64,000 nt of DNA, from contig BFEA01000032.1 in assembly GCA_003427395.1 (NCBI GenBank), forward strand, positions 3,093,454 to 3,157,453, in the 5' to 3' direction. This DNA is from Chara braunii. Taxonomy: Eukaryota > Plantae > Charophyceae. Shown one piece after another: positions 37,517 to 63,882 of the stretch; the stretch's first letter is position 1; every line of letters begins with the position of its first letter. Below the pieces are notes generated by a model that ran no database searches, was not told the origin of the DNA, and was given only the letters and a program-made list of their open reading frames with translations. A program made the position numbers and the translations under genes.

Positions 37517-37559
<43 letters not shown>

Positions 37560-37604
37560 NNNNNNNNNNNNNNNNNNNNNNNNNNNNNNNNNNNNNNNNN
37601 NNNN

Positions 37605-37672
<68 letters not shown>

Positions 37673-39503: not shown

Positions 39504-39665
39504 AAGGAAAAAGAAAGGGATGGGCTATATGCGTGCCAAATGCACTGCAGGGTTTTACATGTGCACAGTGTGCTGCTACTAGCCTACCCAATGTGACCAC
39601 TAAACACTCCACGAATGTATACCCTTGAAGAGGATCCTCTCTCAAATGATACAGGGAGAACTCAC

Positions 39666-39755
39666 CTATACAATTTGAGGATATAATCAAGGACAAAATA
39701 GACACTTGCCACCGCTTCCAGAACTGGTAGCACAATTGGCTGGTATGTTGTGTAT
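39666..39755 (-). CDS. Host exon encoding the S1-S2 loop and S2 helix of a voltage-sensor domain (BK/Slo-like channel candidate)
   Basis: AAG acceptor and AG|GTGAGT donor, phase 2 at both ends. Encodes YTTYQPIVLPVLEAVASVYFVLDYILKLY, with E...F..DY..K spacing typical of S2. Confidence 0.7.
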
Positions 39756-40187
39756 CTTCACATATGACAAGACAAGCAAAGGGCCAATCAGAATGCAGTT
39801 CAGAGCATTGTCCCAATACAGAAGACAAGGAGATGGAAGTAACCAACCAGTCACCGAGGGAATGGAGAGAAAATCCAGCAGATGTGCTTGGATCTTGTGT
39901 GTAACTCAGCTTACCAAGTTAAGTTTTTGCAAAACATAAATACCTCACATACACTGTAAAAACAGGCAATTGTTAACTTGAAGGAGGGTTGGGGGAGAAG
40001 AAAGAGAAAACAACAGTGGATGTGTGTTCATTCTGTTGGCAGGAAAGAGTGAACTTTTCCATGACAATTCCGTCAGCCACCAGTCATCAGGTTGACATAA
40101 TACTCGCACAGGTCTGTGGTCACTGCATTCATGAGCATCTAAGCAGTCAATCTTGATTTCCCATTTCCTATAAACAGAAAGAGAGGC

Positions 40188-41355
40188 AAGTGATAGGTAA
40201 AAGCCCGTCAACTAGAATGCAAGCTAGAGCAACACTACATAATCTGCTGCAGACGGACATTACAGCTCAATGGCAGCGAGCCAAGAAACAGGCAGCGGCT
40301 AACCCTGAAAAGGCGAAGGACATTCTCAAGAAATTCCACAACAAAGTATTGGCTGAAGGTAAAGTAGCCACAATGGAGGGGCACAGGCTGATCTTCTGTT
40401 GGTTCAGAGAAGACCAACAAGACATGGCAAACGGACACCAGGGGCAGACACAGCAACTGGCTTCACCATGAACAAGGGAAGTCAAAGCTTAGAAAGGCGA
40501 AGGTCAAGAGTGAAGTGCAAGCAAAGGATCACAGGTTAAGACAGAATCGCAAACGGCAGACCATAGCAAGAAGCAAGGCAACTTTGGAGAGTAATGGCAA
40601 TGAGATGAAAGGGAAGGGTTCACAGAAAAGGATCATTGGAGACTATTGGCAATGAGAAGAAAAGGAAGATTTCAGGTAATGATACTACAAATTAACGAGT
40701 CTGCAAAGTAAGCAGACCTCTAGAGGAATACAGGTAGGTTTAAAGGTTTAAGAAAGTAGGGTTTAGGGCTTAAGGAGATAACACTCGGAAAACATTGTCG
40801 GAAAGAGAGATTCAAGCTACGTCTGGCACAAGTCAAGGGAATACAAATGTAGTTATGGCATAGGGGAACAATAGGGACCACATTCCAATACAAGGAGGGT
40901 GCTAAAGTCGTTTCTTGATATTCATGAGTTATATGACAGGTTACTATGGGTAATCTGAGAGGAAAGGACATAGTAAACAGCGGAGACAATACCGGTTTTC
41001 TAGAAATTCAGGTATGACATGGCAGGCTCTTAAGGAAAGGTCTGAGAAGAAAGAATATGCCGGGCTTACGAGTTAAACTGCTGGATGACGTAGAATAGGT
41101 TAGGCAGGGGGAAGGGGTGGTATATCCTTCCTTAGGGAAGTAATCAATGCCGCCCACTCAGACCCTCCACCCATCATGGGTAGGAGCATGGGTGGGTACT
41201 TTTTGTAATCAATTATGACTCGCCGGGGGAATAGGAACCGGACTGTTGCTCCCCAGAATGGCAGGAGCCAGAACCGACAGGTTCTGTTCATAAAAAAGAA
41301 AAAAAAGAAAAAAAGAAAAAAAAAAAAAAAGAAAGAAAGAAAGAAAGAAAGAAAA
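40188..41355 (+). mobile_element. LINE C: 5'-truncated LINE (ORF2 C-terminus, 3' UTR, A-rich tail)
   Basis: 12-bp TSD AGAAAGAGAGGC (40176-40187, 41356-41367). LLQTDITAQWQRAKK..NPEK is homologous to the LINE E C-terminus. Conserved 3' motif present. Confidence 0.88.
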
Positions 41356-42767
41356 AGAAAGAGAGGCTGCAAGATAAACAGGCCTTTCCCTATGCATTGC
41401 ATTTTGGGTACACGATCGAACCTGAAGACGTTAATGCACAAGTTGAGAGTTCAAAACTATAGCAAAACGTTAATACCAAACAGAAAAAGAGCCGGATATA
41501 ACTGCTGGCAAGGGTTTGTTACTTGTTCCCCTTATGTTAAGATCACAATTTTGTTGTAAAAGCGAAGCTTTCTGAACATGGGCTTTGTGAGAATGGCATC
41601 AGTCATCCATTTTTTAACAAAGGCTCTCTGTATCAATCTACCCACTTGACGAAACATAGGTGCTGCCATCCCTTCAACCTCACATACAGGTTCCGCACAT
41701 TTGGATTTGCCTCCTGCCCTTCAGGTAAGAAAGCCTTTTCTGCACAAGAGAATTGTCCACATGGAGTTTGCAAGGATGAGACATCTGCTTACTAGAGTTG
41801 TCTGCATCCTTTTCCTCGCTTCACAAAATCACATCTGCGGTCTTCACAGTAACATTAGTTGAGCTCTACACATTGCATTTGTCTCATTCCATTCAGACGC
41901 TATCCGTCTCATTCCGTTCAGACGCTACTGTCTGCAAGCAGTTCTGGTCCGCAGTTCGACCGGGGGGCCCTCCTCGGCCTGCGAGCCTCCTGGTCGAACA
42001 GGTGGGTGGACTGGCCCAGCCGGCCCCTGGTTAGCCCCAGCCCCCCAGCGAGAATACTGGGCAGGAAATGGCCCGGGTGGCCTCCTACGGCCTGGGAACT
42101 TCTTCCCACGGACATGGAGCCTTGATACGGTGGGACATCTATTGCCTAGACCGCCACAACGTTTCTAGAGTAGAAACTTAGAAAGTTAAAAACATCACAT
42201 GTCGGATTGCCGCCTCCTCTCATCTCGTGACGAGAACATGCTTCGGTGGTTGTACCATACGCGGAGGCAACACCTTCGGTGTTTAGAGCCTGCTGCCTTT
42301 GTCTTCCTCGTTGCCCTTACCTGCATCATTCTGTGTCTGCCAGCGGGGATTTCCAACTGGGCTATGTCAGTAGGGCGGGTTCGCTGGCGGGACTTCTGAG
42401 TGCTCTCAACGGCGATTCTGATCGATCAATGACAGCGATCTTCCTGCTCCTGAAGAGGCGGTGGAGCTCCATTGTTTGTTTTATCTCGTGCTCGTATGTG
42501 CTTGTTTGTGGGACGTCTTTGCAGGTACTCAAAGCGGTCTTGCTGACATGGCGGGTGTCTATCTTCTTCTCTCGACGTTTTTTGGGACTTGTAAGTCTAC
42601 CTTTCGACTTGCTTGGCATGTCATAATCATGCGGTTTGCCTTGACGGGCTCCAGTCTGGAATTTTGATGCGCGTGGATGGGTTGTAGGGTAGGTGTGGGT
42701 TGATGAGATTTGGGGCAAGGCATTGGTATGGCCCCAAGTAGTGGTTTGCCAGCATGCTTAGATTAGA

Positions 42768-42811
42768 CCTCCTGATGAGTCTAAGTGCGGGGTAGACAAA
42801 ACGCGTCGAGG
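42768..42811 (+). ncRNA. Type I minimal hammerhead ribozyme of Penelope-element style, with core GAAA changed to AAAA
   Basis: Stem I CCTC/GAGG; CTGATGA; stem II GTCTA/TAGAC; AAAA; palindromic ACGCGT as stem III; GTC cleavage triplet. Confidence 0.75.
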
Positions 42812-43261
42812 GTGTGGCCGCGTGGTTGTTGAAACATTGATCTTTGACATGGTGATTTTGTTATCTTCTTTGCTTTCTTATAAATTGTGTGTGTAACAGC
42901 CTTGTTTTCATTGATGAATTATTGTGCTCTGTTCTCACGTTCATGCTGTCTTGCCGGGCAGTTTCCTCTTCTTCTTTTTTGGCCTCCTGCGGCCTCGCTG
43001 AGGCCGCTGCCACTTATAAAAAAAAAGCTGGGGCCAGTAGGCCCCACATTTCAAATGCAAAAAGGCTGCCGACCCCGTTTCCGTTTGCCACACTCGCAGC
43101 CCTCCTCATGCATTGGAGAACAGCTCGGCGTCACCTGCACCGTCGATTACAGCAAGCCAGTGCACCGTCCAGTGCAGCAACCCAGCGCGCCATTGCCTGC
43201 GGCCAGCCAGTGCGCCATGTAAGCCGGCTTGTGATGTGGTGATGGGCGCCATCTTCGTCTT

Positions 43262-43263
<2 letters not shown>

Positions 43264-43347
<84 letters not shown>

Positions 43348-43510
43348 CCCGTCGATCTTTCTTCTTCTTCTTCTTCTTCTTCCTCCTCCTCTTCTGTATC
43401 TCCTCTTCTTCTTCTTCTTCTTCTTCTTCTTCTTCTTCTTCTTCTTCTTCTTCTTCCTCCTCTTCTATATCTCCTCTTCCTCTTCTTTTTCTTTCTTCTT
43501 CTTCTTCTTT
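43264..43510. repeat. (GA)n followed by (TTC)n microsatellites
   Basis: Visible directly in the sequence. Confidence 0.95.
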
Positions 43511-44729
43511 GAATGTTTCGATGTTGAACTTGAACTCCCTCCTCCCCCATCAGTCTCCCTCCTCACTCATCAACCTCTGCCCCAGCACCCTCCTCCCCTC
43601 ACCATCTTTATTTTTTATTCCTCTTCCCCGTCGCCTCACCTCCCTAAGCGACCTGGTTAACAGTGGGTGTTATTTTCGGCGAATTTTTCACTAAAACCGT
43701 CATCGCGGTTCCCACTTCCTTCACTGTCTTTCTACCTCTACTACTACTCCGTAGCCTGGCTAGACGTCCTCCTCCCACACCTACATAGCCTGGGCCTACT
43801 TCTACCTCCTCCCTGCTCCACCTCCATAGTCCTGGAGGGCTTCACCATCACCCTCCAGCTCCACCTTCTCCTCCAAGTGCTCCACCAACTTCCCCCTCTG
43901 GGTGGAGCAGCCTCATGCCCACTTAAAGGATGAACCGAAGAGAGCTACTCTACTCGTTGAACCCACTGATATACTTTGACTGCCCGGCATCCAGTACCTC
44001 CCGGCCAAGCACTTCCCAGCTCTACCCCGCGTCCCTTGGTTGCAATAGGCCTACCCGGTATTCCTTCTTTTGGCAGGAACACCGTCTCAGCCTGCAACCC
44101 GGCCTCAGGGTCTGTATCTAGCCTAACCTGTAACTAGGTACGGGCTGAATATTTATGGATTGTTTTTGACAGCTACTGGACCTCTGATAAGCCGACCTGA
44201 CTACAGGGTCTACTCAAGTTCCTGGGAAATCCTACAGGGTCCCTAGCCAATCCCTGGGTGCTAAACTACCCCCCAGCATATCCTCCTGATAACTTTCAGT
44301 ACTCTCTGGCCGTCACCCTACTCCTACTTCGTCCCTGTCTGAGGCACAGCCACACACACAGCCAACAGAGTTAGCAAACAGACACAGACTTGGACTCTGC
44401 AAGCACACGACACATGCACGCTAGTGGTAGGCCACACACACACGCACACACACTTAGTGTGGGCAGCTGGCGCTCAACCACCATCAACGTGGCCAGCCTT
44501 GTATGTGAGTCGCATTAGTAAAAAGGGAGCTGCAAGAACAAATAGAAGGGGTACCCCAACCTCCTACCCCCAACAGAGAATAGGCTATAGAATTCAAGCA
44601 GACCACACACCAACAGTAGGCACAGCTAGGATACAACCATCAGGAAAAGTCCTAAAAGCAGAGCGCAGCCAAGCTAGGGTATAGGGTTTTAGCTTCAAGG
44701 GTCACCCTCACGTTAAACCGCGCCCAAGG

Positions 44730-45386
44730 NNNNNNNNNNNNNNNNNNNNNNNNNNNNNNNNNNNNNNNNNNNNNNNNNNNNNNNNNNNNNNNNNNNNNNN
44801 NNNNNNNNNNNNNNNNNNNNNNNNNNNNNNNNNNNNNNNNNNNNNNNNNNNNNNNNNNNNNNNNNNNNNNNNNNNNNNNNNNNNNNNNNNNNNNNNNNNN
44901 NNNNNNNNNNNNNNNNNNNNNNNNNNNNNNNNNNNNNNNNNNNNNNNNNNNNNNNNNNNNNNNNNNNNNNNNNNNNNNNNNNNNNNNNNNNNNNNNNNNN
45001 NNNNNNNNNNNNNNNNNNNNNNNNNNNNNNNNNNNNNNNNNNNNNNNNNNNNNNNNNNNNNNNNNNNNNNNNNNNNNNNNNNNNNNNNNNNNNNNNNNNN
45101 NNNNNNNNNNNNNNNNNNNNNNNNNNNNNNNNNNNNNNNNNNNNNNNNNNNNNNNNNNNNNNNNNNNNNNNNNNNNNNNNNNNNNNNNNNNNNNNNNNNN
45201 NNNNNNNNNNNNNNNNNNNNNNNNNNNNNNNNNNNNNNNNNNNNNNNNNNNNNNNNNNNNNNNNNNNNNNNNNNNNNNNNNNNNNNNNNNNNNNNNNNNN
45301 NNNNNNNNNNNNNNNNNNNNNNNNNNNNNNNNNNNNNNNNNNNNNNNNNNNNNNNNNNNNNNNNNNNNNNNNNNNNNNNNNNNNNN
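44730..45386. other. Assembly gap
   Basis: Run of N. Confidence 1.
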
Positions 45387-45547
45387 GTGGGGTTATTAGG
45401 GGTTCTGGACCCATTTTTTTTTTTTTTTTTTTTTTTTTTTAGCGGGGTGCCGACGACCCCCGACCGGTAGGTGCCGACCAGCCGACCGGTCGGCGGGTCG
45501 GCAGCCGACCAGTCAGGGGTCGCCGACGGTCGGCGTGTGCAACACTG
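45387..45547. mobile_element. Right end of a probable hAT-type MITE; the left end is probably in the gap
   Basis: CCGAC subterminal repeats ending GTGCAACACTG (reverse complement CAGTGTTGCAC). No second end or TSD is visible. Confidence 0.5.
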
Positions 45548-45551
45548 GTCT

Positions 45552-45941
45552 AGGGTTTAAATTTTAAAAGAAAATTAAGTAAATACGTTGCTTAAGGTGA
45601 GAGAATGCAAAGAAGAATACAGGTGCCCCAAAACGTTCTCGCATAATACACATACCTGACAGTTTTGCAGCTGAGAGGAGCAGAACTGGGATTAATCAGA
45701 TTGGTATGCAAAAGTAGCACAGGCTAACTTAGGCAAGGGTGAGAGATGGTATATCCTTCCTCAGGGAAGCAATCAATGCCGTCTACTTGGGCCTCCCAAC
45801 CATAAGGGGGGGGAGCGTGTGTGAGTCTCTTATGTACTTATTATTAACTTGCCGGTGGAAAGGAACCGGACTGTTGCTACGCAGAATGGAAGGAGCCAGA
45901 TGAGAAGCTCTGTCTGTTAGTTAAAAAAAAAAAAAAAAAAA
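45552..45941 (+). mobile_element. LINE tail D with the conserved 3' motif and poly(A)
   Basis: 45669-45914 is homologous to 21455-21717. Poly(A) at 45923-45941. Confidence 0.8.
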
Positions 45942-45961
45942 GTGGCGTCATTTATTTACTT

Positions 45962-46108
45962 GGGGCCTAGCTCAGTTGGTACATCCACGAACTGTTGAAA
46001 CACAGACCCGAGTTCAAATGCTGATGGAATTAGATGAGTGAATTTATCTCGGACTGGTCAATGTGGTTTTTGGAGATGATATCTCAAGGCCACTCCTCTT
46101 TCTTTCTC

Positions 46109-46144
<36 letters not shown>
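45962..46144 (+). mobile_element. Candidate tRNA-derived SINE
   Basis: A-box TAGCTCAGTTGG (45968-45979), CTGT/ACAG stem, B-box-like GAGTTCAAATG (46010-46020), unrelated body, long poly(A). No TSD found. Confidence 0.55.
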
Positions 46145-46146
<2 letters not shown>

Positions 46147-46269
46147 AGAAAAAAAAAGAACAGGCTGCTCTGGTGAAAATCTAAAACACACTTAGAAAAC
46201 ACAGCAAAGCATAGCAAAACAGACAGAATCGCAAAGACATCTTTACCCAGGCATACTTGAAGGTTGATG

Positions 46270-49170
46270 GCTTGCGATGTTTCTTTACGTGTTTGACCAT
46301 GGCATCCAGCTGTTTGCACATGGGAGTGACCACACGAGCAAGCAGCTTTCGATGCTTTGGCCCCATGGCCAAGCATGCCAGGGGTCAGTCCGGTGTGACG
46401 ATCGGGCAACAATAATGTCACAAGGACTGTGGATGCGTTATCCGACCTACAGTTCACTTGGAGTCATACCTGTTTGTGGAGCGGATGGAGTTACTGTACA
46501 GATTTTCAACAGCACTTAATCCTTTATCCCGAATGTTCTGATCGCGCACAATTTTTAAACCTTGCAACAACTGAGTAACAACTGGTTGATTTCTTCCGCT
46601 TTACCATTTGTTTCCAGATGGCAGACGGATGTCCATACAGGCCTGAGCAGAATTCTTTCCACTATGAAGTGATGACATGCGTATCCCGATCACTAACGGA
46701 TGTCGTGTTTGTGAAATCTGTTCATCACTAAATCGGTAGGTGCATGCGGCGGAGGAGTGATCGTGAGATACGTGGCAAAGCAGTCACACACACCATGACC
46801 TGTGAAAAGCCCTTCTCACTCGTCTTTCCCATGTCAGTGAAATCGATACAGATGGACTGATCGAGACCATCAGGAATAGGCAGAGGCTTGAGCAGTCCCT
46901 GAGGTTTCTGCCGCTGGATCTAAATCCATTGGCAGACCTGAAAATTTCCCACGAATTCTCATGCATCTTCCTTCATACCGGGCCAATAGAAACTTTGCAA
47001 CAGAATTCCATAAGTCTGGAGGAACCCAAAATGACTACTTTGTCCTGACACCAACCCAGAATCTTATAACGAAGCGGTTCAGAATTAGGCACACACTAAT
47101 GATTGATCATTCTCATCGTGTGTATGAAGCAGCAAACCCAAATGTGTGCAGAAATCAGGCTGGCTTGATGGATCTACCAGCAACTATGTATGATAGAACC
47201 AATGTGGCATCCTTCATAGTTTCTTCAGCTATCGACTGTCGGAGTCTTCCATGGAGATCAGAAGATGCGCACATTAGGGCGACAAGGAAGAGAATCGGAA
47301 ATGCGATTACAACAAAACCCTTCTTGAGTGCCAACTCGACAAGATCTTACAATAATCAACGCCGGGTCTTGATCCACTACAAAGTCGATGATCAAAATAA
47401 CTTTGATGTGGTGACCGAGAAGGAGATGCTTCCAGTAAAGCAGGGTTGCATGGAGCGCAAATAATTCATGCTTGTAAGTGGAGGCAGCCAGCCGAAGGAG
47501 GCCAAGCGTTGACTCATATACTCGACCGGACGCAGCCCAATCCCATCATCTTGCTGTAGCACGGCCCCAATGCCATATTCACTAGCATCGGTTGTGACTA
47601 TAAGAGTCAACGCCGGATGTGACTTGACAACAATGCTTTCAATGTGCGGCATGCGGGCTCCCTTGCATCAATCCAAGCAAAGGTAGCTTGCTTGCTGGTC
47701 ATCCTACTCAAGGGATATGCAATCATAGAAAAAATTGGTTCACGTATGTTAGTATTATGTTAGTACGTTATCGTCAGGCATTGATTGCCTCTATCCTGGC
47801 TGCTTCTGGCTCGAGCTCAGCATAAAAAATTTGCTGCCCAAGGTAGATGATGCTCCCCTTCCCAAATCTAGAATTCTTTCCCCTCAAGATGATCATCATT
47901 TCTCACAAGTGCAGCTCATGTTCCTCCATTAGGAGAAGAATCATCTTTGAGAGTAGCAGCAAAATTAATATTGGAAATAGAAGCATCATCATGAAAAGTA
48001 AAAAATAACAGCTGTAGTTGTAACAGACCAAGTAGTATTAGGACGTTTAACTATAGATAAATGTGTACACTGTTTTCTTCTCATTCTTTCTCTATATTTT
48101 GCAAAATGCAGACGCGGTCAAACAATTAAAGGTCACGGAAGGGTCATGATCCTCATCAAGAAAAACATGTTGCAGATTACCTTCTGGGTGCTTGACTGTG
48201 AATCAGTGTTCTTGCCAATAAGTAGCATAACCATTAGCACGCAGCCAACACAAATCCAATCGCAGCATCAAATAGACACTCCTCCACCACATAGAAGTTG
48301 AGGGAGTAAGTGACATGCTTGCCCTTGCAAAGGTAGTGGGAATACCCTTGAAAGCACGTGCACATGTGAAAACCGCTTGGTTACCAACTTGAGTCCAGCT
48401 AGGATGCAGCAAATCCTCAACCTTCATTCCCAGATATGCCTTCTTGAGGCCATGCAGAAATAACTTTGCAGTAGTGCTGCAGTCTCAAGTCAGGATGATT
48501 TACACATAGCCGGAAATAGATTAACTCCATTGTTGCAAATGGGCATTGAAGTTCGCATCTTCCTAGTCGTCCCAAGGCTCAACATAGGCAAACCGTTGGG
48601 TGGGTGCCTTGGGGTAAGCCTGAACTTGGGTCACAGGTGTACAATTTGGCTCAGCGACCAACCACCGAAGTCACCAATGCAGACTGTTGTTCCTTCCCCA
48701 TTGTAGAAAGGACTGACAAACCCTCTAAGCCCGAGTTCGGTTTCCTGTCAGTTCGCACAAAATTATTGGGTTTCTTACGATACAAGCACACTCCACAGTC
48801 TATTCATTGTTGCCAAGCCTAAGGACTGATGCTAAGATGCTCTCAAGGCTTCCTTTCCTTAGTGCTGAGGTGCAAGAGAATCTGCACCCCTTGAGGGAGG
48901 GGTTTGAACTTCTTGCTGGACCCAATGCTGGTGCTAACCCCTTTGTTACTGGCTGCAGAGTTCTTGAACACATTGAGATGTGTGTCCTCTTGCTCGTTGA
49001 CGACATTAGCTTTAGAGGAGCCCTCTACATCGGGACCATCCCAAGGGTGGAGAGTCCTTGGCCTCGGTCCTCATCAGATACGAAGCCCTCCTCTGACTCG
49101 GTCGTGCTAAATCCCATCATGGGTTTCCCATGGAACGGCCATGAGGTATACATCTTCTTATGATCAGCAA
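46270..49170 (-). mobile_element. Degenerate Ty3/gypsy internal region (RNase H and integrase remnants)
   Basis: VTTDASEYGIGAVLQQDDG..RPVEYMS at 47392-47652; integrase-like remnants at 46450-46700. Boundaries approximate. Confidence 0.7.
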
Positions 49171-49179
49171 ACCGGCATG

Positions 49180-50761
49180 TGTTACGATCCTGGCTATTCC
49201 AAAGTGCAAATACACAAGGAAAGACAATGTCGTTCAATTGCAAAAGAGATGACAGAACTTGGAAAGAGAAAGAGACAAAGGAAGAAGAAGAAATGGAAAG
49301 AAAGAAGAAGAAGAAGATGTACACCAGCAAAGGACCTATGACAAATCCCCCTTCCCTGGCCACTCACTCCATCCTCCTTATCTCCCCAATTTTACTCTTC
49401 AATATTGCAAAAGAAATGAAAGAACTTGGAAAGAGAAAGAGACAAAGGGAGAAGAAGAAAGAAGAAGGAAAGAAGAAGAAGAAGATGTACACCAGGAACA
49501 AATCCCCCTTCCCTCGCCACTCACTCCATCCTTATCTCCCCAATCTTATTCTTCAATAAATAATAATAAGCATAGATCTAGATAATAATAACAACAATGA
49601 ATGGCTGAACCAGAACCAATGTCCGAATCTCCGTCTTACTGCCAGCACAGCATGAGGTCCACCATAGCCATGACATTCTCCGTCTACCTCCTCCGTTAGG
49701 TGATGGCTATGGCGGACTACTAGGGACCCTGCCCCGGCGTTCAAAAGACAACAGAAAAGCAGGTGTCCTTTGCAACTCACTCCTCCATGCCTGACTCCGC
49801 CCTGAAGCACTCTTGATGCAGCGCAACCCCTACTGGGGCCTTCCAGGTGCAGCGCCTACCAAGGAGATGAAGATGATGCCCACCATAGCCAGGTAAGTAC
49901 CCCTGCCACTCTCCTCCGCAACCCCTTCTTCCTCCTCCTCCTTCCTGGTCCAGTCCACCATAGCTGAGGTGGATGGCCAGGCTCTCATCCTCCCAGCGCT
50001 GTACACTACCTTCTTCCCTCGAATACAACGTACGGTCGTTATAGCTGTATCTAGACTAAAAGATTTCTCAAATACAACTCTAATGACCGTACTTTGTATT
50101 CGGGGGAAGAAGGTAATGCTCTAACACCAGGCGCTCCAGCACTGTGACGCCCAAACTTGCACACTGCAAAAATGAGGAGTCCAGCACTCCTGGAGATACA
50201 ACGTCCAAGTTGCCTCTTGAGCGGTGACTTCCAGGCCGCGCGGCCTTCCAAGCAACCTGTACCTCCTCCCGTTCAGAGGGAAACATCATTGCAGGTCTGA
50301 TATCGTCCGCTACAGGCCCTAGACTCGAACTTCAGGACTGGTACCCTAGACCTGTCCCTACCGGACTCCTAAAATTCACACGGCCTCCAAAGGCACTTAC
50401 TTTTTGTCTTCTTCTGCTCGGCCTACTGCTACTCAAGCACTACCCTAAGCTACGCGGGCCTACACAACCGCTACTTGAGTGCTAGCCTATACTACTTGAG
50501 TGTTCCCCTGCTGCAACCCTCTTAGTCACGGCCACAGGCAAGTACCCGCCCTGAGGGCCTCTCAAACAAACAAGTACCCTGGCGGGTCGCACACACTCAG
50601 GCAGACATGCACTCAGGCAGGCACATGGAACCCAGCAAGCACGCACATACACCGGCCTAGAAATCTCAGCGGAAAGCGGGAATCTCAGCACGACACACAT
50701 TCGAGCGGCAAAACTCAGAAATCAGCAGGGTTCTCAGTCTATGTTTTTGCAGGTCATTACA
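49180..50761 (-). mobile_element. Solo LTR-like element of about 1.6 kb
   Basis: TGTTA...TTACA ends. The left part is homologous to 63148-63872 and the right end is homologous (inverted) to 63883-64000. TSD is unclear; strand is inferred. Confidence 0.65.
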
Positions 50762-52547
50762 CATACTGCGTTCTCCTCCAGGCGGACGAGTGCATGTGTG
50801 TGGTACCCCCAATCTTCATGCTTTTGGGTGGCAAGCTGGCAATATAGTGTAAGAGGGGCTGCATTTTTTGTAGTTTCCGATTTTGAATCTCTGTGATTTG
50901 CAGGTCCGAGGTGGCAAAGAGGGTAGATACCTTTTGATACGAGGCCTGCATGTTACTAGTCCAACGTTGCTGCCCCAATTCTACAACACAGCTCGCCAGC
51001 CACCACAGCTGCTTCCTCTCTCCCGGCCATTATCTGGCCGCAATGCATTGCTCTAGCATTGTCGCATGCTGCCAAAGCCTGAATGTGTGAGCTACCCCGG
51101 CCTCCTCTCTTTTAGCCTTTGCAAGGCAGTGATATGGGACGTGGTAGGCTCCACTGCCTTCCAGTCTGAGTCTGGGTCCTAGCCTGTGTAACTAACTGGA
51201 GGCTAGGCCTACCAGTTAGTGACAGAGGCTGGAAACTCTCGCTGGTCCAGTACCTTCTAGCTCGGCTTGACTTAGGGCCTGCCGTCTTGTCTCTCGCACG
51301 GCCTTCACTCAGGGCCCGTCTGCATTCTGCACAGGCAGCCTTTTTTCGGGTTCGTCAAGGACTTCGGCGTCACAGACAGCCAAACATTGTTTAATAACTT
51401 AATTCGCAGTTCTACACAACATATGCTTTCCTCGAGTTTTTGACTTTTATAAGTTCTATTTTCTTTCAAGTTTGTACTGGGGCTGCCCTTGACCTGCCAG
51501 AACCTGTTCCAGTCGGGCCACCAGGGCAGCCAGAGAAGCCCACAGGCCACGACTCGGAACCTAGTGCCCAGGCCCATGGCTGGCATGACCAGGCCAGCGA
51601 CATGCAACATTTCCTCTCTTTCTCGCGTTGTATTTGCCTGTTTATCCCTTCCCTCAGCTGCTGAGATTCTAAACCGTGGCGCCCATGTACATCCACCAAA
51701 GCCAGTGCCCCCTTGACCGTTACTCTTCATTCTACTAGAGAGGGGCATTCTCATCAAACATGTCGTCTGCTGCCTGTAGAACGAGTGATCATTGCAATCT
51801 CGCCAATAGTCTGCATCAGAGCATCTATGATAGTATGAGTGATCATCCATCTCGTCAAAAGTCTGTATCTATGATAGTTCTAAGTACACCTTTCGGATTG
51901 CCTTGCACCATTGTTTGTCTCTTTTTCCGTGCTCTACAGCTTCCACATGTGCTGACTGTGGCTATATGACTGGCTGTGAATCCACAAACTGTTATTGTTG
52001 ACATAGGCACCGCATCATGTAGCACCCTCAGTCGATCACTATGCTTGCTTCAAGAGGATGACACCACGGAGGCCAACCACAAGCAAGAATCAAGCTTCAG
52101 AATCATTGTAAGCAAGGCACGGAGTTCGGTATACCTCCATCAACATCCTCATCAGGACTGAGTTCACTACACGTCCATCAACATTCTCATCAGGGGGGCA
52201 TTGACCACTGCACCGCGACAAAGCTACCACCAAAGAAATGCTGGTCTTGGCCATTCATCCTTGCATTCCATTTTATGACATTTTTTGTTACCACTCCCAA
52301 CTCTACCACTTTCAGCAATCCAGAATTCATTGGTCTTTTTTGTGTGAATAAAGAGAGACCTCCAGCGTTATTGTATCCATCAGCGTTATGAGTTTGAACT
52401 CGTGATTTGATCATGAACAGGTACGTGTGCACTATTTAGACACCTGGAAGGTGCATCTGCTTTGAAGTCTCAAGTCTCTGGTTTGCAAGAAAAAAATAAA
52501 CAATGACAATAAAAATTATAAAATCGCCTATTCTGGTCCTATCATAT

Positions 52548-52832
52548 CAGGGCTGCACCGGCCACTGGCCGGTTGGACCGGACCGGACCCATGGGCCGGT
52601 TGGCCGGCCCAACCGGAAATCCGGTTGGGCCCAAAACCAGGTCGATTTTTTTTTATTATTTTTTTTTGGTGATGGAGTTGGACTGCGCTTGTCGAGATCT
52701 CCCCGAATCCGCAGAGAAAAGATAGATGTGCAATTTTTTTTGTCATGGGGGGTGGGGGTGGGGGGCGGCAGGTGTTGTGGGGGTGTTGGTGGGGTGGTTG
52801 CAGCGTACCTGTCCTCCCGCGCGCGCCCCCGC

Positions 52833-52903
<71 letters not shown>

Positions 52904-52904
52904 N

Positions 52905-52976
<72 letters not shown>

Positions 52977-53744
52977 TTCTGCGCGCCCACTAGTTTCCAC
53001 ACACACACTTACCCCAGCGCGCCCATTTCATTCGCAAACTTCTCCTCTGCCAGAAGAAGAAGAAGAAGAAGAAGAAGAAGAAGAAGAAGAAGAAATGGAA
53101 GAAATGGAAGAAATGGAAGAAATGGAAGAAGAAGAAGAAGAAATGGAAGAAATGGAAGAAATGGAAGAAATGGAAGAAATGGAAGAAGAAGAAGATAGCA
53201 AGAAGAAGAAGAAGATGGTATAGACTTACCTTTACTGATGGACGGCAGGGCGGGGGGATGGCGATCCGAGACCGGGGCGGATGTGGGAGGGGGGCGACGC
53301 AGTCTCAACCGCGTTCACTTTCGACGAAGTGTCGAAGTGACGGGTTGTGCTGCTCGAAAGCAGCTGGAGGCGGGAGGCTGGGTGGTGGGATCGGTTGCTG
53401 GGGCACGTTCGGATCGCCAAGAACATCGGGTGGTTTCCCGCCCGAATGTTCAAAAACTGGCGGCCTATCTGGGCTGCAGATCTCACCAGATTGACGGCCC
53501 AGATAGGCCGCCAGTTTTTCAAATTTCTGGCGGGCCTCCCGGACCTGGTTTTATTATTTTTGGGACCGGGAGGCCTCCACGACCAGCATGGAGGCCTCCC
53601 GGCCCCAAAAAAAATTGAAACCCCCCCGCGATCGAGCTGCGCAAAATTCCACCGGGGGGGAACCGGCGCAGTCCACCAGCCGGTACCACTGGCCCGGTTC
53701 CGGTGGGGGAAGGAGGGCCCGGTGGGACCGGAAATTCAGCCTTG
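52548..53744. mobile_element. hAT-type MITE 4 containing (CT)n and (GAA)n / GAAATGGAA repeats
   Basis: Ends CAGGGCTG / CAGCCTTG; CCGG subterminal arrays. GGTCCTAT occurs at 52535-52542 and 53745-53752, the left copy offset 5 bp from the TIR. Confidence 0.65.
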
Positions 53745-53757
53745 GGTCCTATTCAAT

Positions 53758-54205
53758 AAAATTACTGAAAGCCAGTCAGTGTCTGTCTTGGCCATAATTT
53801 CCGACCTTGACGCTACCCAGCAGAACCCCCCAGAGGTATTGCTATGGTCTACAAAGTAGTATAAACTGAAAATACGGAGAATGGAATAAATTAGGAAAAT
53901 TCAAAATTACCATTTTCCATTCGTCCAAACATTTGGGACATTGAAAAGGCCTCGGCCCCCTGGCGCGTGACGAATGACGTGCGCAAATTACTGAAAACCA
54001 GTCAGTGTCTGTCTTGGCCATGATTTTCGACCTTCACGCTACCCAGCAGAACCCCCCAGAGGTATTCCTATGGTCAACGAAGTACTATAAACTGAAAACA
54101 CGGAGAAAAGAGTGGAATAAATTAGGAAAAATACCATTTTCCATTTGTCCAAACATTTGGGACATTGAAAAGGCCTCGGCCCCCTGGCGCGTGATGAATG
54201 ACGAG
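53758..54205. repeat. Diverged tandem duplication of about 227 bp
   Basis: AAATTACTGAAA...GAATGACG starts at 53758 and at 53985. Confidence 0.9.
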
Positions 54206-55058
54206 CGTTCCCCCCACAGGGGCCCTCCCTTGATTCCGAAATCAATTCTGAACTTGAAGTAGCAAAATGGGCAGTGTATGTGATGTGTGCTGATGGATAG
54301 GTAGGCAGACCAGTGAATGGCACCTTGAAGCAACTCCAGTGCGAGCACCGGTTAATGTCGCATGATGTTAGCAGCTGTCCTCTGTGTGCATGCCCTAGCG
54401 AAGTGGGCAGACGTGTATATCTTCGATTCGATATTGCATGTGGCACCAGCCAGTCATCAATGCAGAAATGATAGCAAATCCATCCATCATTCTTCTCTGA
54501 AAGGCCCACAGTTGAAGCTTAGATTCCTATTTCAAGTGACTAAAGGGGCCCACAGCACTGACAGAGTCTTCCCCCCCTTTTTTTTACATGGCCCCTATTC
54601 CAGGCAAGATTCATCAGAGAAGCCCTCTGCACATCCATCTGCTCAGACAAGCTAGATGGGCAGACCAGACCCAGAAGGTGTAGCTCATAACTTCAGGTAT
54701 TTGACCTTCAATTTCTTCAAACTTCAAACCAGCTTCTTGTTTGTTTATGTAGTTTTTAACTTTTTTTTTTAACTCTTTTTCTTCTTTTTTTGAACACACA
54801 GGTTGCAGGTCTGTTAGAGGTAGCGATAAGAGCAACCCCCTCTAGCACAACATATTCAGCTGTTGAATTTCTGGCTTTTTGAATGGAACGAGGGGCCCAA
54901 TCTTCAATGAGAACCAATCAGGAAGTCAAACAGCTTGCGATAAAGAGAGAAATGCTTTCTGTGAATCTCTATCTTCTCCTCCTCGACTCCTGAACTTGTC
55001 TTGTGTAAGAAGAATCTCTTAGCCCAGCAGATAAATTCAGAGCACAACATTCAGCATG

Positions 55059-55325
55059 TAAGTCATCTCCCAGATGTCTCTTCTCATCTCCTAACACCCT
55101 CCTACCTACCTTNNNNNNNNNNNNNNNNNNNNNNNNNNNNNNNNNNNNNNNNNNNNNNNNNNNNNNNNNNNNNNNNNNNNNNNNNNNNNNNNNNNNNAAG
55201 TCATCTCCCAGATGTCTCTTCTCATCTCCTAACACCATCCTACCTACCTTACCCTATCCTCCTGTCCTTCCAGATGTCTCTTCTCCTCTCCTAACACCCT
55301 CCTAGCTTATCCTATCCTCCTGTCC
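55059..55325. repeat. Pyrimidine-rich minisatellite of about 50-60 bp spanning gap 55113-55197
   Basis: Repeated CCAGATGTCTCTTCTCATCTCCTAACACC. Confidence 0.85.
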
Positions 55326-56098
55326 AATTCATGGTGCAACACAACTTTGAGACAATTCCACTCATCACAGCTGAAAAGAAGTGGAATGAGACCAGGAGAG
55401 AAGAAGAATGAAGAAAAGGAGAAGAAGACATCGGATTGAACCAATGCCATCTCCCTCCTCCTCTCACCATCAACATCTGCATCACAAGGAAACTGACATG
55501 TCCAACTGCAAGTAAATGCCCAATTTAAAATCACAATCAACTCTCCTGACCAGCGTTCATAGGGCGGCAAGGCAATTGGCAGAAACGGCAAAGCAATGAT
55601 CACCACAGCACGCGAATCAACAATGCTGCAGTTTCTTTATCCCTCTTCTTGCCTCCCAACAAGAATTATAATTCTCTGCTCTCGCTGGTCTCCCTACCAG
55701 CGCACAGACAAACATACCATATGCCATATGGCACGTCCTTGCACAACATAAAGCCGAATTGTGCACTGCACAGCGCACCCACACAGGCCACCATACCAAA
55801 TATCCTGGCAGCGCACCTAAATAGATAAACAGGCACCTTAGCTTGCAATTTTTCCAGACATGTCAAACCTGAAAGGAAGGAGATGCGGTGCCTTTTTCTA
55901 TGTTTTTATGGGAATTTACTTGGTGCTTATGTCCTGAAATGACAAGTGTGCAAGCCTGCACCAATTGGTCACAAGGGCCCCACACTGAGCTGTTCTTTCC
56001 ACGTCAACTTTTTGTGCACGTTTCCTAAGCAACCAGCGCCAACCACACAATTCTAATGCAATTTCATGGCTACTGAAGAAGTCAATCTTGGTACTTAC

Positions 56099-56148
56099 GT
56101 GGAGCGAATGTATAATCCCACTGATAACAGCGCTAGGACAAACTCCAC
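56099..56148 (-). CDS. Host exon encoding an S1-like helix of a voltage-sensor domain
   Basis: TTTTTGACAG acceptor and AC|GTAAGT donor. Encodes VEFVLALLSVGLYIRS(T); its phase-2 end matches the exon at 39755. Confidence 0.7.
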
Positions 56149-56696
56149 CTGTCAAAAATTATAAAGGAAACACATCACAGCACCAGTGCCCACAACCAAC
56201 AACAAGGGCTCAGAGAGACCCACTCGAGTTACCTGATTTGGACGCTTGCCCCCAGATATAGGAAACTGTTACGATTTGCAAGATACTCAAATATTTGCAT
56301 TCGTCATCACACTGATTGAGATGAAATCACACTTGATTAGAAGCTTGCTGAAAATTCGAAATTGAACATGCTCACTTGGCTACTTCATATAACACAGAAA
56401 TTTGTCTCAGCAAGGAATCAGCTTCAGTCGAAACAGGAAATGATCCAGTAGGCTGCCAGAACTGCCTGGCTATGCCCTACAGAGAACGCTGCTTCTCCTT
56501 TTTCCACTCCAGCAAATTTGCAGAGTGAAATTTTGATGAACTACAGCTGCCCGGCTTGTCATTTTTGGTGAGCTGGGTCCCAGCCTAGAGCTACAGAGCC
56601 TCTCTATTGCAAAGACCTAGAACTACAGGTCTGGAGGGGCTTAAACCACAATGACAAGACTTAAGGCCCCTGCCATGCAAGATTTCTTCATGCCTC

Positions 56697-57175
56697 ACTC
56701 CTAGAATTTCGGAGGCTCTGGGCTAACAAAACCACAATGGCTGGTGGCGCCAGCCACAAAAGAAAAAAGTCTGCCGCTGGCGCTTCAGCAAAACCTGTCA
56801 TGCAGTGCATCGCTGCCATTCCCGGGTGTACTGGTGGTTTAAGGGGTCCAGTGCTCGATGATGTTTGGCTTTCTCAGTATGCCGTTGGATCATCGTACGC
56901 TTTAGCATAGATTGGTTATAGAGTCTTGTGAGGTTTGTCTTGTTATCTATAAGTCTGGGTATGCTATACTATGTTAAATTCTTATATAGAACCGGTGGTA
57001 TTTAGACAATATCTTTGGTACGAATCCAGAGATATTTCCTCTTTACACCCGGGCCTGGCGGCGCTACACTGCACGCCAAGCTTTGCCAAACTGCCAGCGG
57101 CCCACTTTGTCTTTTTGGGCTGGCATCGCCAGCCAATGTGGTCTGGTAGCCCTGAGCCTCCCAAATTTTAGGAGT
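56697..57175. repeat. Imperfect inverted repeat with arms of about 133 bp
   Basis: 56697-56830 aligns to the reverse complement of 57044-57175. Confidence 0.8.
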
Positions 57176-57399
57176 ATGCGGTCATGTGGCTACAGAGGCA
57201 AGTTGCCACCTTCCTATGGACGGGCAATCACGAGCTCCCCAACCACCGACCACAGGGCTCAGGTGATGGTTGGAGGAGGGGGTGGCGGACTTGCACTTTG
57301 TGGTCAAGGGAGGTTTCCTCTACACCCAGGGTTAGAGGAGGGACATCCCTAGAAGCAAATGAACCTGTAGGAGTCCCAGTGGCAGCAACGCCAGGACAA

Positions 57400-60300
57400 C
57401 CAACAGTGTTTCAGGAGTGGTAAGGAAGGGCACATCATTCCCTTCTACCCACTGTGGAACCACCCAACACCGCAGCCACAGCAAGGGTAGCAACAGTCAA
57501 AAGGGAATGGCTATTAGAAATAGAGAAGAGGCACACACAGGAGAGAACCCTTCCCACTCATAAGCCAAGGTAGAGGTTGATGTAGCCACCAGCTTGGATA
57601 GATGACTAGACGTTGCTTGTTGTGGGATCTCTTTGAGTGTTCTCCCCGACAAACATAGGCGAAGAACTGATCCCCTTTTCGCGAGGGCTAGTCTACGAAA
57701 AAAAAAGACACCAGACTTCGTGATGGAAGACGTAGAGGTTTGTAAGAGGAGAATAGGCGCTGTGATAGATGGCGGGGCCACCTGGAGTAATATCTCCCAA
57801 AGAGCAATCAAAATGCCCCTAGACATGAACTAGAAGAGTCAGTAGTCCCTAGAATGACTCGAATGAGCGTGGGGTAGTACTCAGAGGCAGTGAAGGCATA
57901 CTTACAGTTGGAGGATGGAGAAAAAATACAGAGAGTGTTGCACTCTTTGACCTTCCTGTGGAAGATGACATACCCCTGGTTATGGTTCTACGCATGGATG
58001 CGGGAATGACAGCGAAAGCAGATGTGAGGATGGGAGAAGTTGGTTGCTGCTTTGCCCATCCAAGAAGAACAGGACAAGAAGAAAAAAAAAACGCCATGGG
58101 CATTCCTAGGACGACCAGAGGTGGCAGTCAGGACGACACTGGTTGGAGCTGGGGCGGGTCAGCTACCCTGTAACCTAACAGGTCAGGGGTGTGAGGCCTG
58201 GAAGAGACCTGGCAGGGAACAAGACAGCTTCGGTGGGTTTTGGTTTCATCGGTTAGGTAATTCTTGGGTTTCCGGGTATTCAGATGACATTTGTGGATTG
58301 TAGAATGCTTTTAACTATCTCAGAACAATCAGTAGCTTTCTCTTCATCCCCCATGAGTACTCAGTGGTATTCTCATGAACATTTATGCCATTCTCAGCCA
58401 AAGTCAAGTAATGGCCCCGGTATCTCATTTGTTTTGTATATATCTCATATGGGATGCTGAGCCTGGTTCCCAGCGTGTGCTGCTCCCCACAAATAGATTG
58501 GAGCACTGCCACACCCTGCCTTCCCCCCAAAAAACGTTGTCCTTCTCTGTGTTGTATGAGCACACCCACGTTGTCTAGATACATGGTTAAGAACAAGTTA
58601 GTAGATCAGGTCTACCTGGTGTATGTAAAACCTGAGAAGAGGTAGAAAGCAAAGGACGGGAAGCCAAGAGAAGAAACAGAGTCACTGTCAACCCAAGTCA
58701 AGAAGTTGTTAAGAGAAAATTGCAAATGTGCAAGAGGAACCAAGGGGAATAGTAGAGATGAGAGTCTGATGCGCCTCCATATTGAGACAGAGCCAAGCCG
58801 CAGTAGGTACTCAACTCACCGGGCCTGATTTTTCTCCTCGAACTTCTCTTTCAAGGCCCTAAAGAACGTCCGTATATCCGTCTGTCGCGAATATGCCACC
58901 ATGGTTTCGCAACCCGCACTTCTCTTTAGAGACAAAGCAAAGTTTGTGGCATCTCCCCCTAGGAACGAGCTCGCCATCAACACCTTGTCAAAGTGGGGGA
59001 TTAAGATGGCACGGCACAAACCAACTAGAGTTAAGGAAGTAGATTCAGGGGTTAGTAGATAAGGGGTGGATTAAGCCCAGTTCATCGCTCTATGGGTCGC
59101 CTGTTTTGTTTGTACCTAAGAGAGAAGGGGAACTTTGACTATGTACAGTTATAAGGTCTAAATGTGATACCAGTGAACAATGCAGAACAGTTACCCCTCC
59201 TATATGAACTGGTAGATAGGTTCTCTAAGATAGATTTTTTGGCGTTAGGATATAGATAGGTTCTCTAAGATATATTTTTTGGAGTTAGGATGCAATGACC
59301 CTACCATCAAATTGCAATGACCCTCGAAGATCAGCACAAGACCGTATTTAGAACTAGATATGGTCGCTACGAGTTCAATGTGATGTCCGACTAACACCCA
59401 TGCCACTCCTCCAGTGCTGCATGGACCCCATGCTTAGAGACTCGCTTACCAACGCCCCTGCTACTTCTCCGGTGCTGCATGGACCCCATGCTTAGAGACT
59501 CGCTTACCAAGGTGAAGTCCATTGTGGCCCGTTTGGGAGGGCTGCACTTCAGGGGGCTACTTCTGAGGCCAATAAGGCCAAGAAACAGTAGACCGACTAG
59601 GCTGTTACAACAGGATTGGATCACATATTTAAAGGCTTGGAGGAGAGGTTCGCCGATTCAGAGAGAGCCAAGAAAGTTGCTGCACAGCTTATGAGGATAA
59701 GCCAGTCACAATGGTAGGGATCCCTCTCCAAGCTCCTCTCCAAGCTCTATGCAGTTTGGGAAAGACTAACCTCTTCCCCTGGGTTATCGTTGCCAAGTAT
59801 ATTTAGATGACCTTCTAGTTCTCAGTAAGACCTTAGAAGAATACGAGGAGCACCTATTCAAGGTCATGACTAAGCTTAGAGAAAACAAGTTCAGGTGAAT
59901 CCAAAGAAGTGTGAGTGGCTGAAGAGTTGTGTGCTGTACCTCCGTCATGTCCTAGATGGAGATGGGGTGGAAGCAAATTTAGATGGCAGACCTTAGAAGA
60001 ATACGACGAGCACCTATGCAAGGTCCTCACTAAGCGTGGAGAAAACAAATTCACGGTCAATCCAAAGAAGTGTGAGAGGGTGAAGAGTCGTGTGTTGTAT
60101 GTCGGTCATGGGGTATCGTCAGAACCAGGCCCCAAAGATAGTAAGATTGTAACCATTAGAGATAGGTCGAAGCCCAAGAACCTCACAAAGTTGTGCTCAT
60201 TCCTACGACTGGCGAACTGTTATAGAAACTCGTTAGAAACTTCACTACACACAAAGTTCGCAAGCTGCTAAAGAATGAAGCCTTAGGAACGTGGCAACAT

Positions 60301-62560: not shown

Positions 62561-62646
62561 GAAAGCAGCCCCAAATACAGGAATGACGATGGGAAAAGAT
62601 GGTAGTAGGCTACTAGTTATGGTTGTATGATTGGAATCGTGGTAGA

Positions 62647-62750
62647 TTTTTTATTTTATTTTCTTTGGGACCATTTCTCGGTTTCTTGCGTGTCATCCTT
62701 GCACAGGGGCCATGCTAATCCTCTCTGTATCTTTCCAATTTTAATGGACA
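62647..62750 (-). pseudogene. U6: 5'-truncated retroposed U6 snRNA copy with an A-rich tail
   Basis: Minus strand reads AAAATTGGAAAGATACAGAGAGGATTAGCATGGCCCCTGTGCAAGGATGACACGCAAGAAACCGAGAAATGGTCC. Candidate TSD GTAGATTTT / GTAGAATTT. Confidence 0.92.
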
Positions 62751-62759
62751 GTAGAATTT

Positions 62760-62860
62760 GTCCTCCAGTACATCCACTGGAATTGGAACACTACAGAGAA
62801 GATTACTGTGCGGCAGTGTGGCCCCTGTGCAACAGGCATAAATCGAGAAATGGTTGAAAT
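62760..62860 (+). pseudogene. U6: Degenerate near full-length U6 snRNA copy
   Basis: GTCC..ACATCC..AATTGGAAC..TACAGAGAAGATTA..TGGCCCCTGTGCAA..GCATAAATCGAGAAATGG, with a 10-nt insertion and a small deletion. No TATA box or USE upstream. Confidence 0.85.
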
Positions 62861-63872: not shown

Positions 63873-63882
63873 AGGGGGGTAG

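Follow-up and report, generated by a model that had tools for sequence, protein, structure and literature searches.

A probably truncated Chara braunii gene model, CBR_g32405, may encode the missing S1-S2 front end of the potassium channel gene CbSLO3

Introduction

In animal Slo1 (KCNMA1) channels, the loop between S1 and S2 is short, and S2 has an acidic residue towards the outside, a phenylalanine at its centre and a basic inner end. The S2 charge-transfer centre of Shaker is spaced as an acidic residue, six residues, a phenylalanine, two residues, an acidic residue, three residues and a basic residue. To our knowledge, a channel without S1-S2 would neither fold nor gate. Chara has long been the classic plant in which to study action potentials, and the work of matching its large-conductance K+ channels to the SLO/BK genes of its genome is still in progress.

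Among plant BK/SLO channels, MpBK2a of Marchantia polymorpha has been functionally characterised (bioRxiv 10.1101/2021.06.01.446568). The S0 helix of animal BK channels is not properly assigned when MpBK2a is aligned with them, although the structural model of MpBK2a includes S0 (bioRxiv 10.1101/2021.06.01.446568). Since alignment does not assign it in MpBK2a, S0 may not define the plant clade. For Chara braunii, Table S1 of Sussmilch et al. 2021 gives CbSLO3 as g32402 and CbSLO2 as g32413 (NT) plus g32414 (CT), one gene split over two models, and a third SLO gene is listed at g30987 (bioRxiv 10.1101/2021.06.01.446568). The SLO listing takes in just four of the roughly 35,000 Chara models; two sets of these are no more than eight models away from g32405, the model described below.

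We analysed a stretch of 64,000 nt from Chara braunii (the window), which is 100% identical to its source scaffold, BFEA01000032.1. The original prediction had placed here a hidden BK/Slo-like channel gene, with two small minus-strand exons on either side of a transposon-filled 16.3-kb intron.

Results

Two exons of a public gene model

The two exons are real but are already part of the public annotation. The minus-strand exon at 56148-56099 (50 nt) has ...tttgacag before it and gtaagt after it; the one at 39755-39666 (90 nt) lies between ...atgtgaag and gtgagt. One codon is split at the junction, with two bases coming from the former exon and the third from the latter, and the phases match. 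Our check of the sequence thus agreed with the canonical AG/GT borders, the matching phase 2 and the translations that had been predicted. These exons are identical to coding exons 2 and 3, respectively, of the public model CBR_g32405, whose product of 192 aa (GBG62822.1, called P0001 below) was deposited as "hypothetical protein"; the junction between them is present in that model, and the gene is therefore not a hidden one. In a tblastn search, residues 146-162 of P0001 matched 56148-56098 and residues 163-192 matched 39754-39665, both at 100%, and phmmer, queried with the exon-3 stretch of 31 codons, returned GBG62822.1 and no other protein. The list of open reading frames behind the original prediction had missed both exons because their open stretches span just 18 or 31 codons between stops. 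The features of the locus are as follows (slashes mark splice borders).

39660..39665, minus strand: strong donor gtgagt, read through by the public model (AGg tga); last residue R192, stop at 39664-39662, P0001 ending in ...LKLYR
39666..39755, minus strand: coding exon 3 of CBR_g32405, residues 162-191; aag/A acceptor, AG/gtgagt donor; phmmer and tblastn, 100%
39756..56098, minus strand: intron 2, assembled length 16,343 nt, including 743 N
41087..41297, plus strand: LINE 3'-tail copy, repeat families D2/D4, in intron 2 (repeat search)
45716..45925, plus strand: LINE 3'-tail copy, repeat families D2/D4, in intron 2 (repeat search)
47395..47667, minus strand: LTR-retrotransposon RNase H remnant in intron 2 (Pfam RT_RNaseH_2, E 2e-09, 37.9 bits against a cut-off of 29.8)
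56099..56148, minus strand: coding exon 2 of CBR_g32405, residues 146-162 including the first two bases of codon 162; cag/G acceptor, AC/gtaagt donor
56149..64000, minus strand: part of intron 1, the whole of which is about 33.1 kb (tblastn of P0001)
L001:10001-10435, outside the window and 33 kb upstream: exon 1, residues 1-145; ATG start, GTG/gtaagg donor

Intron 2 measured 16,343 nt by tblastn of P0001, in keeping with the predicted 16.3 kb. Much of the window had also been expected to be intronic, and indeed the DNA from 39756 to the right end lies in introns of CBR_g32405, whose exon 1 is beyond the window. Both the length of intron 2 and the physical linkage of exons 2 and 3 depend on the scaffolding. 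All N positions (the runs 44730-45386 and 55113-55197 and one N at 52904) fall within intron 2, with 4,975 nt and 902 nt to the nearest exon, and leave the codons untouched; the gaps interrupt no reading frame, and exons 2 and 3 fit in phase without any hidden exon between them. The description of the intron as transposon-filled held in part: two LINE 3'-tails and an RT_RNaseH fragment are present, as are microsatellites, and none of the 10 ORFs scanned, out of 19 of at least 100 aa in the intron, had a Pfam match.

A stop codon read from a splice donor

CBR_g32405 looks truncated because its stop comes solely from reading through the exon-3 donor, AG/gtga. The annotated range ends at this stop, and the model has no UTRs. 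We mapped three oligo-dT RNA runs on positions 33900-39899. About two reads each from runs X1 and X3 fell on exon 3, with the first mate on the plus strand; these few reads were under the threshold for listing joints or loose ends in that interval. Coverage was absent at 38300-39099, where it would be expected for a 3' UTR in an oligo-dT library. From the read-through donor, we infer that the public model is truncated at exon 3.

Two helices with a voltage-sensor S2 pattern

Residues 1-135 of P0001 are strongly basic and serine-rich, with 34 K+R against 14 D+E (net charge about +20). Two hydrophobic segments follow (residues 139-161 and residues 167-190), with a loop of nine residues between them. 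No hydrophobic segment was found in residues 1-125, in which the maximum 19-residue hydropathy was -0.53, and by hydropathy and the charge of the N-terminus P0001 has no animal-type S0 helix with an extracellular N-terminus. Exon 2 encodes the C-terminal two thirds of the first helix (hydropathy peak at residues 139-161), and exon 3 encodes the short loop and the second helix.

The second helix carries the voltage-sensor S2 pattern E-x6-F-x2-D-x3-K (E175, F182, D185 and K189), which bears out the S1-S2-type pattern of the original prediction; about four occurrences exist in the six frames of the window. Elsewhere in the window we found three matches in about 128,000 six-frame codons, only one of them in a hydrophobic context. 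The two helices would be S1 and S2 of a voltage-sensor domain, and the N-terminus would be cytosolic. Such an N-terminus would have S2 cross the membrane from the outer to the inner side, which would place the outer acidic residue first, the charge-transfer-centre phenylalanine seven positions on, then the inner aspartate and then the lysine. P0001 thus combines all four S2 residues (outer acidic, phenylalanine, inner acidic and basic) with a predicted N-in topology.

P0001 resembles animal Slo1/KCNMA1 in its short S1-S2 loop, the outer acidic residue and central phenylalanine of S2 and the basic inner end of S2. By contrast, it lacks both S0 and an extracellular N-terminus, and the residue three after the S2 phenylalanine is an aspartate, as in Kv channels. 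The S2 spacing is identical to that of Shaker-type Kv channels, a likeness that does not imply family membership; Pfam Ion_trans was unmatched. Like MpBK2a as seen by alignment, P0001 has nothing hydrophobic ahead of S1. The two would share a cytosolic N-terminus, S1-S4, a K+ pore and two RCK domains, P0001 being known by its S1-S2 part alone.

Searches for relatives

We searched with exon 3 singly and with P0001, the public protein that carries the joined exons. The Pfam search for Ion_trans and other channel families proposed earlier yielded no channel match: exon 3 matched nothing, and P0001 had sub-threshold matches to unrelated families and to no channel family, Ion_trans and BK_channel_a included. 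In phmmer searches of the PDB, neither query found a channel or a Slo chain at E up to 10, so sequence similarity between P0001 and the Slo chains in the PDB is undetectable at that level. Against 1.84 billion representatives, the exon-3 stretch found only GBG62822.1 itself. Word searches with P0001 and with P0001:133-192, in a length range that leaves out full-length channels, returned the protein itself or nothing, and a metagenome scan for relatives of P0001 found none. Because S1-S2 is a short and weakly conserved query, this missing homology is compatible with BK/Slo membership.

Leads came from the ESM Atlas, which we queried with residues 100-192. Of the 30 named clusters closest to the query, 24 were Ion_trans (0.92; 186 shared features), and the first structural neighbour was a 936-aa streptophyte cluster with BK_channel_a and Slo-like_RCK (TM 0.66 by query). 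The AlphaFold model of P0001 had a pLDDT of 49, and Foldseek with this model found no match in the PDB or the Atlas. The structural lead from the Atlas was thus not reproduced, because the AlphaFold model was poor and the fold searches were blank.

Downstream channel exons in the window

Of the S4, pore and RCK regions that the original prediction proposed to seek left of the window, none was found in the 39.6 kb downstream of exon 3 within the window. The minus strand of the window has no selectivity filter (T-V/I-G-Y/F-G-D) in a credible setting. In the 39.6 kb there was no convincing S4 (RxxRxxR) and no T-x-G-Y/F-G pore, and Ion_trans, BK_channel_a and RCK (Slo-like_RCK) matched none (0/401) of the minus-strand open stretches of at least 30 aa at 1-39665; this Pfam scan covers open stretches of that length inside the window. 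A single S3-like stretch, at 38512-38405, adjoins a microsatellite and has no RNA, Pfam or PDB support.

The Pfam matches on the minus strand at 1-39665 were transposon domains and a mitochondrial TatC insert, and nothing else. A look-alike of exon 3 at 40420-40304 (E 3.2) has no usable splice sites, and we attribute it to chance. An exact look-up of 11 ORFs of the window returned no called gene.

If the model is truncated, the mRNA should splice from exon 3 on to S3, S4, the pore and a cytosolic tail, and these exons would lie mostly or wholly past the left edge of the window.

Discussion

The most likely outcome of this analysis is a known family at a known locus, with the finding amounting to an annotation repair. 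By numbering, g32405 lies three models from CbSLO3 and eight from CbSLO2, assuming that g32402 of the published table is CBR_g32402 and that the numbers rise with the coordinates. It comes from the same species as both genes, would share a scaffold neighbourhood with them and, judging by the published table, probably belongs to an SLO/BK-family K+ channel gene cluster on BFEA01000032.1. Unlike g32402 or g32413/g32414, it is listed in no SLO gene. Most probably, g32405 is the unrecognised 5' end of CbSLO3, with g32402 three models on in the downstream direction of the minus strand; the split of CbSLO2 over two models parallels the error proposed here for g32405 and g32402. If so, the gene would encode a voltage-gated K+ channel subunit that is under RCK regulation and lacks an animal-type S0. 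Overall, we put the chance that CBR_g32405 is a truncated S1-S2 front end, most probably the missing 5' end of CbSLO3, at slightly better than even. Support for the BK/Slo membership put forward in the original prediction is indirect: the ESM Atlas leads and the SLO models nearby by number speak for it, and the Pfam, PDB and protein searches without a channel match speak against it, as does the window without S4, pore or RCK.

Alternatively, g32405 may open a further voltage-sensor gene that has so far gone uncounted, either a fourth SLO paralogue or another voltage-sensor protein, with a long basic N-terminus that has no detectable relatives. We regard this as fairly unlikely.

A 5' end of a different voltage-sensor family (Shaker/SKOR-like, TPC, Cav/NALCN-like, Hv1-like or VSP-like), with the nearness to SLO genes coincidental, seems to us distinctly unlikely. 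An acidic residue three after the S2 phenylalanine is generic to voltage sensors, and in human Slo1 this position holds a tyrosine; the Atlas feature matches were mostly plain Ion_trans clusters, some of them bacterial, and the absence of an S0-type helix from P0001 points the same way. Yet SLO models are so rare in this genome that two sets of them within eight models of g32405 argue against coincidence, the top structural neighbour in the Atlas was a streptophyte BK cluster, and S0 is likewise not properly assigned by alignment in MpBK2a, though present in its structural model.

The clustering of several SLO models on the scaffold could instead mean that a duplication left behind a dead or orphaned 5' fragment, whose coding-looking exons have lost their link to a pore module. 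Very low expression, a repeat-rich region and 39.6 kb of downstream sequence without a channel exon would all suit such a fragment. However, its three exons are intact, in phase and bounded by consensus splice sites across 50 kb, every functional S2 residue is kept, and exon 3 has a few strand-consistent RNA reads, so that we consider this history improbable.

It is more improbable still that the deposited annotation is simply correct and that a complete 192-residue, two-helix protein ends at the TGA after exon 3, even though the Atlas contains 126-aa streptophyte "hypothetical protein" clusters of similar predicted shape. The stop overlaps a consensus AG/gtgagt donor, oligo-dT reads are absent where the 3' UTR should be, and the model without UTRs resembles an ab initio terminal-exon call; we know of no function for half a voltage sensor alone. 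Finally, a chance or mis-predicted, untranslated gene, or as a variant a soluble HEAT-like repeat protein, is hardly credible: no search that we made found a homologue of P0001, and alphaRep designs matched residues 127-162 in the PDB search at E 2.8e-06, but that score sums eight copies of one designed repeat (best single match, i-Evalue 7.5), the Pfam HEAT families were unmatched, the uncommon S2 motif is correctly placed in the topology, and the original prediction and the public annotation reached the same junction independently.

The preferred reading, in which g32405 is the front end of CbSLO3, is an annotation repair in a known gene family and adds no new kind of system. If true, the linkage of CBR_g32405 would give that SLO model a 135-residue N-terminus and half a voltage sensor, and cloning or expressing CbSLO3 needs its true first exons. 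The gene would then extend over considerably more than 100 kb, its 50-nt and 90-nt exons being set among introns of 33 kb and 16 kb, and such a span would be a caution for gene counts in the Chara braunii genome. If g32405 instead begins an additional voltage-sensor gene, it would provide one more candidate for the channels behind the Chara action potential.

Two exons of a public gene model

The original prediction had described a hidden BK/Slo-like gene containing two small minus-strand exons. The features below include these exons (exons 2 and 3) and the segments onto which tblastn placed P0001, the 192-residue product of the public gene model CBR_g32405; L001 denotes the locus DNA of that gene.

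Exons and introns of CBR_g32405
L001:10001-10435, outside the window: exon 1, P0001 residues 1-145 (tblastn), with ATG and donor GTG|gtaagg
56148-56099, minus strand: exon 2, 50 nt, with a pyrimidine-rich tract ending in cag before it and gtaagt after it
56148-56098: P0001 residues 146-162 (tblastn)
39755-39666, minus strand: exon 3, 90 nt, with aag before it and gtgagt after it
39754-39665: P0001 residues 163-192 (tblastn)
56149-64000, minus strand: part of the 33-kb intron 1
39756-56098, minus strand: intron 2

The AG/GT borders, matching phase and translations were as predicted, with exon 2 giving two bases of the codon split by the junction and exon 3 the third. The open stretches around the two exons comprise only 18 and 31 codons from stop to stop, so the exons are absent from ORF lists. 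We searched the exons singly. Searching 1.84 billion representative proteins by phmmer with the 31-codon stretch of exon 3 returned one protein only, P0001 (100% identity over the last 30 residues). This protein (GBG62822.1/A0A388JYI0, “hypothetical protein CBR_g32405”, Chara braunii) forms a singleton cluster; its gene, on scaffold BFEA01000032.1 of GCA_003427395.1, has a range of 50,038 bases. P0001 maps onto both exons, so the junction was predicted correctly, and the gene is public, though unnamed, rather than hidden. A (GT)n microsatellite (L001:10436-10480) starts right after the exon-1 donor.

Probable voltage-sensor features of the protein

Residues 1-135 of P0001 are hydrophilic and basic (34 K+R versus 14 D+E), and the maximum 19-residue hydropathy within residues 1-125 is -0.53. 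Hydropathy revealed no signal peptide-like or S0-like segment before the two hydrophobic segments, which span residues 139-161 and 167-190 and are joined by nine residues. With a cytosolic N-terminus, the second helix would be oriented from outside to inside. This helix carries E175, F182, D185 and K189, the same spacing of outer acidic residue, charge-transfer Phe, inner acidic residue and basic residue as in a voltage-sensor S2, which bears out the S1-S2 pattern originally proposed. The comparison with S2 of Shaker is established for this spacing. Elsewhere in the window, only three matches to the S2 pattern occurred in ~128,000 six-frame codons, only one of them in a hydrophobic setting. 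Chance is unlikely to have placed this pattern in the correct helix, and with the correct orientation, of a protein that had been predicted independently, and the exons of CBR_g32405 likely encode a voltage-sensor S1-S2.

Pfam, PDB, phmmer and word searches gave no direct homology to a channel. Neither Pfam nor PDB matched the 31-codon stretch of exon 3, and Pfam matched P0001 only with Myb_DNA-bind_3 and DUF6756, both sub-threshold. The membrane part of P0001 alone retrieved only bile-acid transporters from PDB, at chance level. Two word searches, whose length window leaves out full-length channels, found nothing beyond P0001 itself, and a metagenome scan found no relatives. Designed alphaRep proteins matching residues 127-162 in PDB were rejected, as their score was summed over eight copies of one repeat (best single i-Evalue 7.5). 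For residues 100-192, the ESM Atlas led to Ion_trans in 24 of the 30 named clusters nearest to them (score 0.92, with 186 features shared), and the first structural neighbour of the Atlas model was a 936-residue streptophyte cluster with BK_channel_a, Slo-like_RCK and Ion_trans_2 (TM 0.66 by query). Our own AlphaFold model of P0001 was poor (pLDDT 49); Foldseek and Atlas searches with it were blank, so the Atlas structural lead was not replicated.

The 3' end of the model and downstream sequence

The last Arg and the stop of P0001 are a straight read-through of the exon-3 donor (AG|gtga), and the gene range of CBR_g32405 ends at that stop, without a UTR. We placed RNA reads from three 2026 oligo-dT runs (X1, X2 and X3) on 33900-39899. 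Over the two exon-3 bins, runs X1 and X3 gave only ~126 and ~130 read letters, and X2 gave none. All were first mate on the plus strand, which fits minus-strand RNA in a dUTP library. None of the three runs covered 38300-39099. In an oligo-dT library, a terminal exon would be expected to come with a covered 3' UTR, which was not seen here; the model looks truncated after exon 3. At exon 3, read numbers were too small for joints or loose ends to be listed, and neither the 56099|39755 junction nor a splice onward from 39666 appears in the reads.

The minus strand of the window contained neither a plausibly placed T-x-G-Y/F-G pore motif nor, downstream, a convincing S4. Among 401 minus-strand open stretches of at least 30 aa in 1-39665, none matched Ion_trans, Ion_trans_2, BK_channel_a or RCK; the only Pfam matches were reverse transcriptase, endonuclease and a TatC insert. 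The exons still missing would either be very short or sit to the left of the window. Exact look-ups of 11 window ORFs matched no called gene. The TatC match fell in one open stretch in the 25482-25811 region (minus strand; E 8.5e-08). One candidate was noted but is not counted as part of the gene:

38405-38512, minus strand, frame of 38512: S3-like hydrophobic stretch with a central Asp and a Pro, 1.2 kb downstream of exon 3 and preceded by a strong cag acceptor

Its phase at the cag acceptor does not fit exon 3, whereas two other AG sites (38573|38572 and 38463|38462) would fit; the stretch had no RNA reads and no Pfam or PDB match, and it adjoins a (GC)n(GA)n microsatellite.

Several other signals appeared in the RNA-seq interval. 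A weaker U6 snRNA copy (33936-34035, plus strand; 54.3 bits, above the Rfam gathering score) accounts for part of the coverage at 33900-34100. At 34090-34122, many reads share a core of ~33 nt (95-99% alike). In each of the three runs, loose ends at 34090 and 34122 mark where these reads pass into foreign sequence, consistent on either side, which suggests a piece of some abundant RNA or widespread repeat. A joint going back 29 nt at 36014-36042 (12, 25 and 35 reads in the three runs) indicates that this repeat, in its expressed copies, has a tandem duplication of 29 nt that is absent at this site.

Introns and assembly gaps

As predicted, much of the window is intronic, with ~24 kb inside introns of CBR_g32405. 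Intron 2 is repeat-rich, with LINE tails, an RNase H remnant, microsatellites and dispersed repeats that recur at 63.4-64.0 kb; calling it transposon-filled overstates what can be shown.

Repeats in and near intron 2
21516-21727, 39278-39498, 41087-41297 and 45716-45925, plus strand: four LINE 3'-tail copies of one sequence, the last two inside intron 2
47395-47667: LTR-element RNase H remnant in intron 2
53050-53231: microsatellites in intron 2

Ten of the 19 intron-2 ORFs of at least 100 aa were scanned, without Pfam matches. The LINE-tail copy at 39278-39498 stops 168 nt short of exon 3; RNA coverage on it is heavy and multi-copy, and loose ends occur at 39421 and 39460. A full-length U6 match (62660-62763, minus strand; 76.8 bits, above the Rfam gathering score) sits in intron 1 in the same orientation as the gene.

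N runs occupy 7922-8572, 37560-37604, 44730-45386, 52904 and 55113-55197; the window matches the public assembly at 100% identity, so these gaps are the assembly's own. The three within the finding are all intronic and keep a distance of at least 902 nt from both exons. No codon is interrupted by a gap, and the phases of exons 2 and 3 agree without a hidden exon. As assembled, intron 2 measures 16,343 nt, including 743 N; its length and the exon linkage depend on scaffolding.

Proposed relation to the Chara SLO genes

A review puts the number of BK genes in Chara braunii at one (GBG80526.1; PMC11617655). The Marchantia SLO preprint gives three SLO genes, CbSLO1 (g30987), CbSLO2 (g32413 [NT] and g32414 [CT]) and CbSLO3 (g32402) (Table S1, 10.1101/2021.06.01.446568). 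CbSLO2 is an SLO gene broken into N- and C-terminal models in this annotation. By usual practice, the g-numbers would be NCBI locus-tag numbers rising along the scaffold. If so, two SLO genes lie at most eight models from g32405, the model treated here, and g32402 would be found downstream of it, given its minus-strand orientation. An unrelated gene would then be very unlikely to sit so near, since SLO models number four among ~35,000. Most simply, g32405 would represent the missing N-terminus and S1-S2 of CbSLO3; the second choice would be a truncated paralogue distinct from it. The original observation stands, and its interpretation is supported in part. The reading we favour, with moderate confidence and on indirect evidence, places CBR_g32405 in the SLO/BK cluster, most probably as the 5' end of CbSLO3. 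The family, locus and exons of CBR_g32405 are already public; what this analysis adds is the probable repair of a split model.
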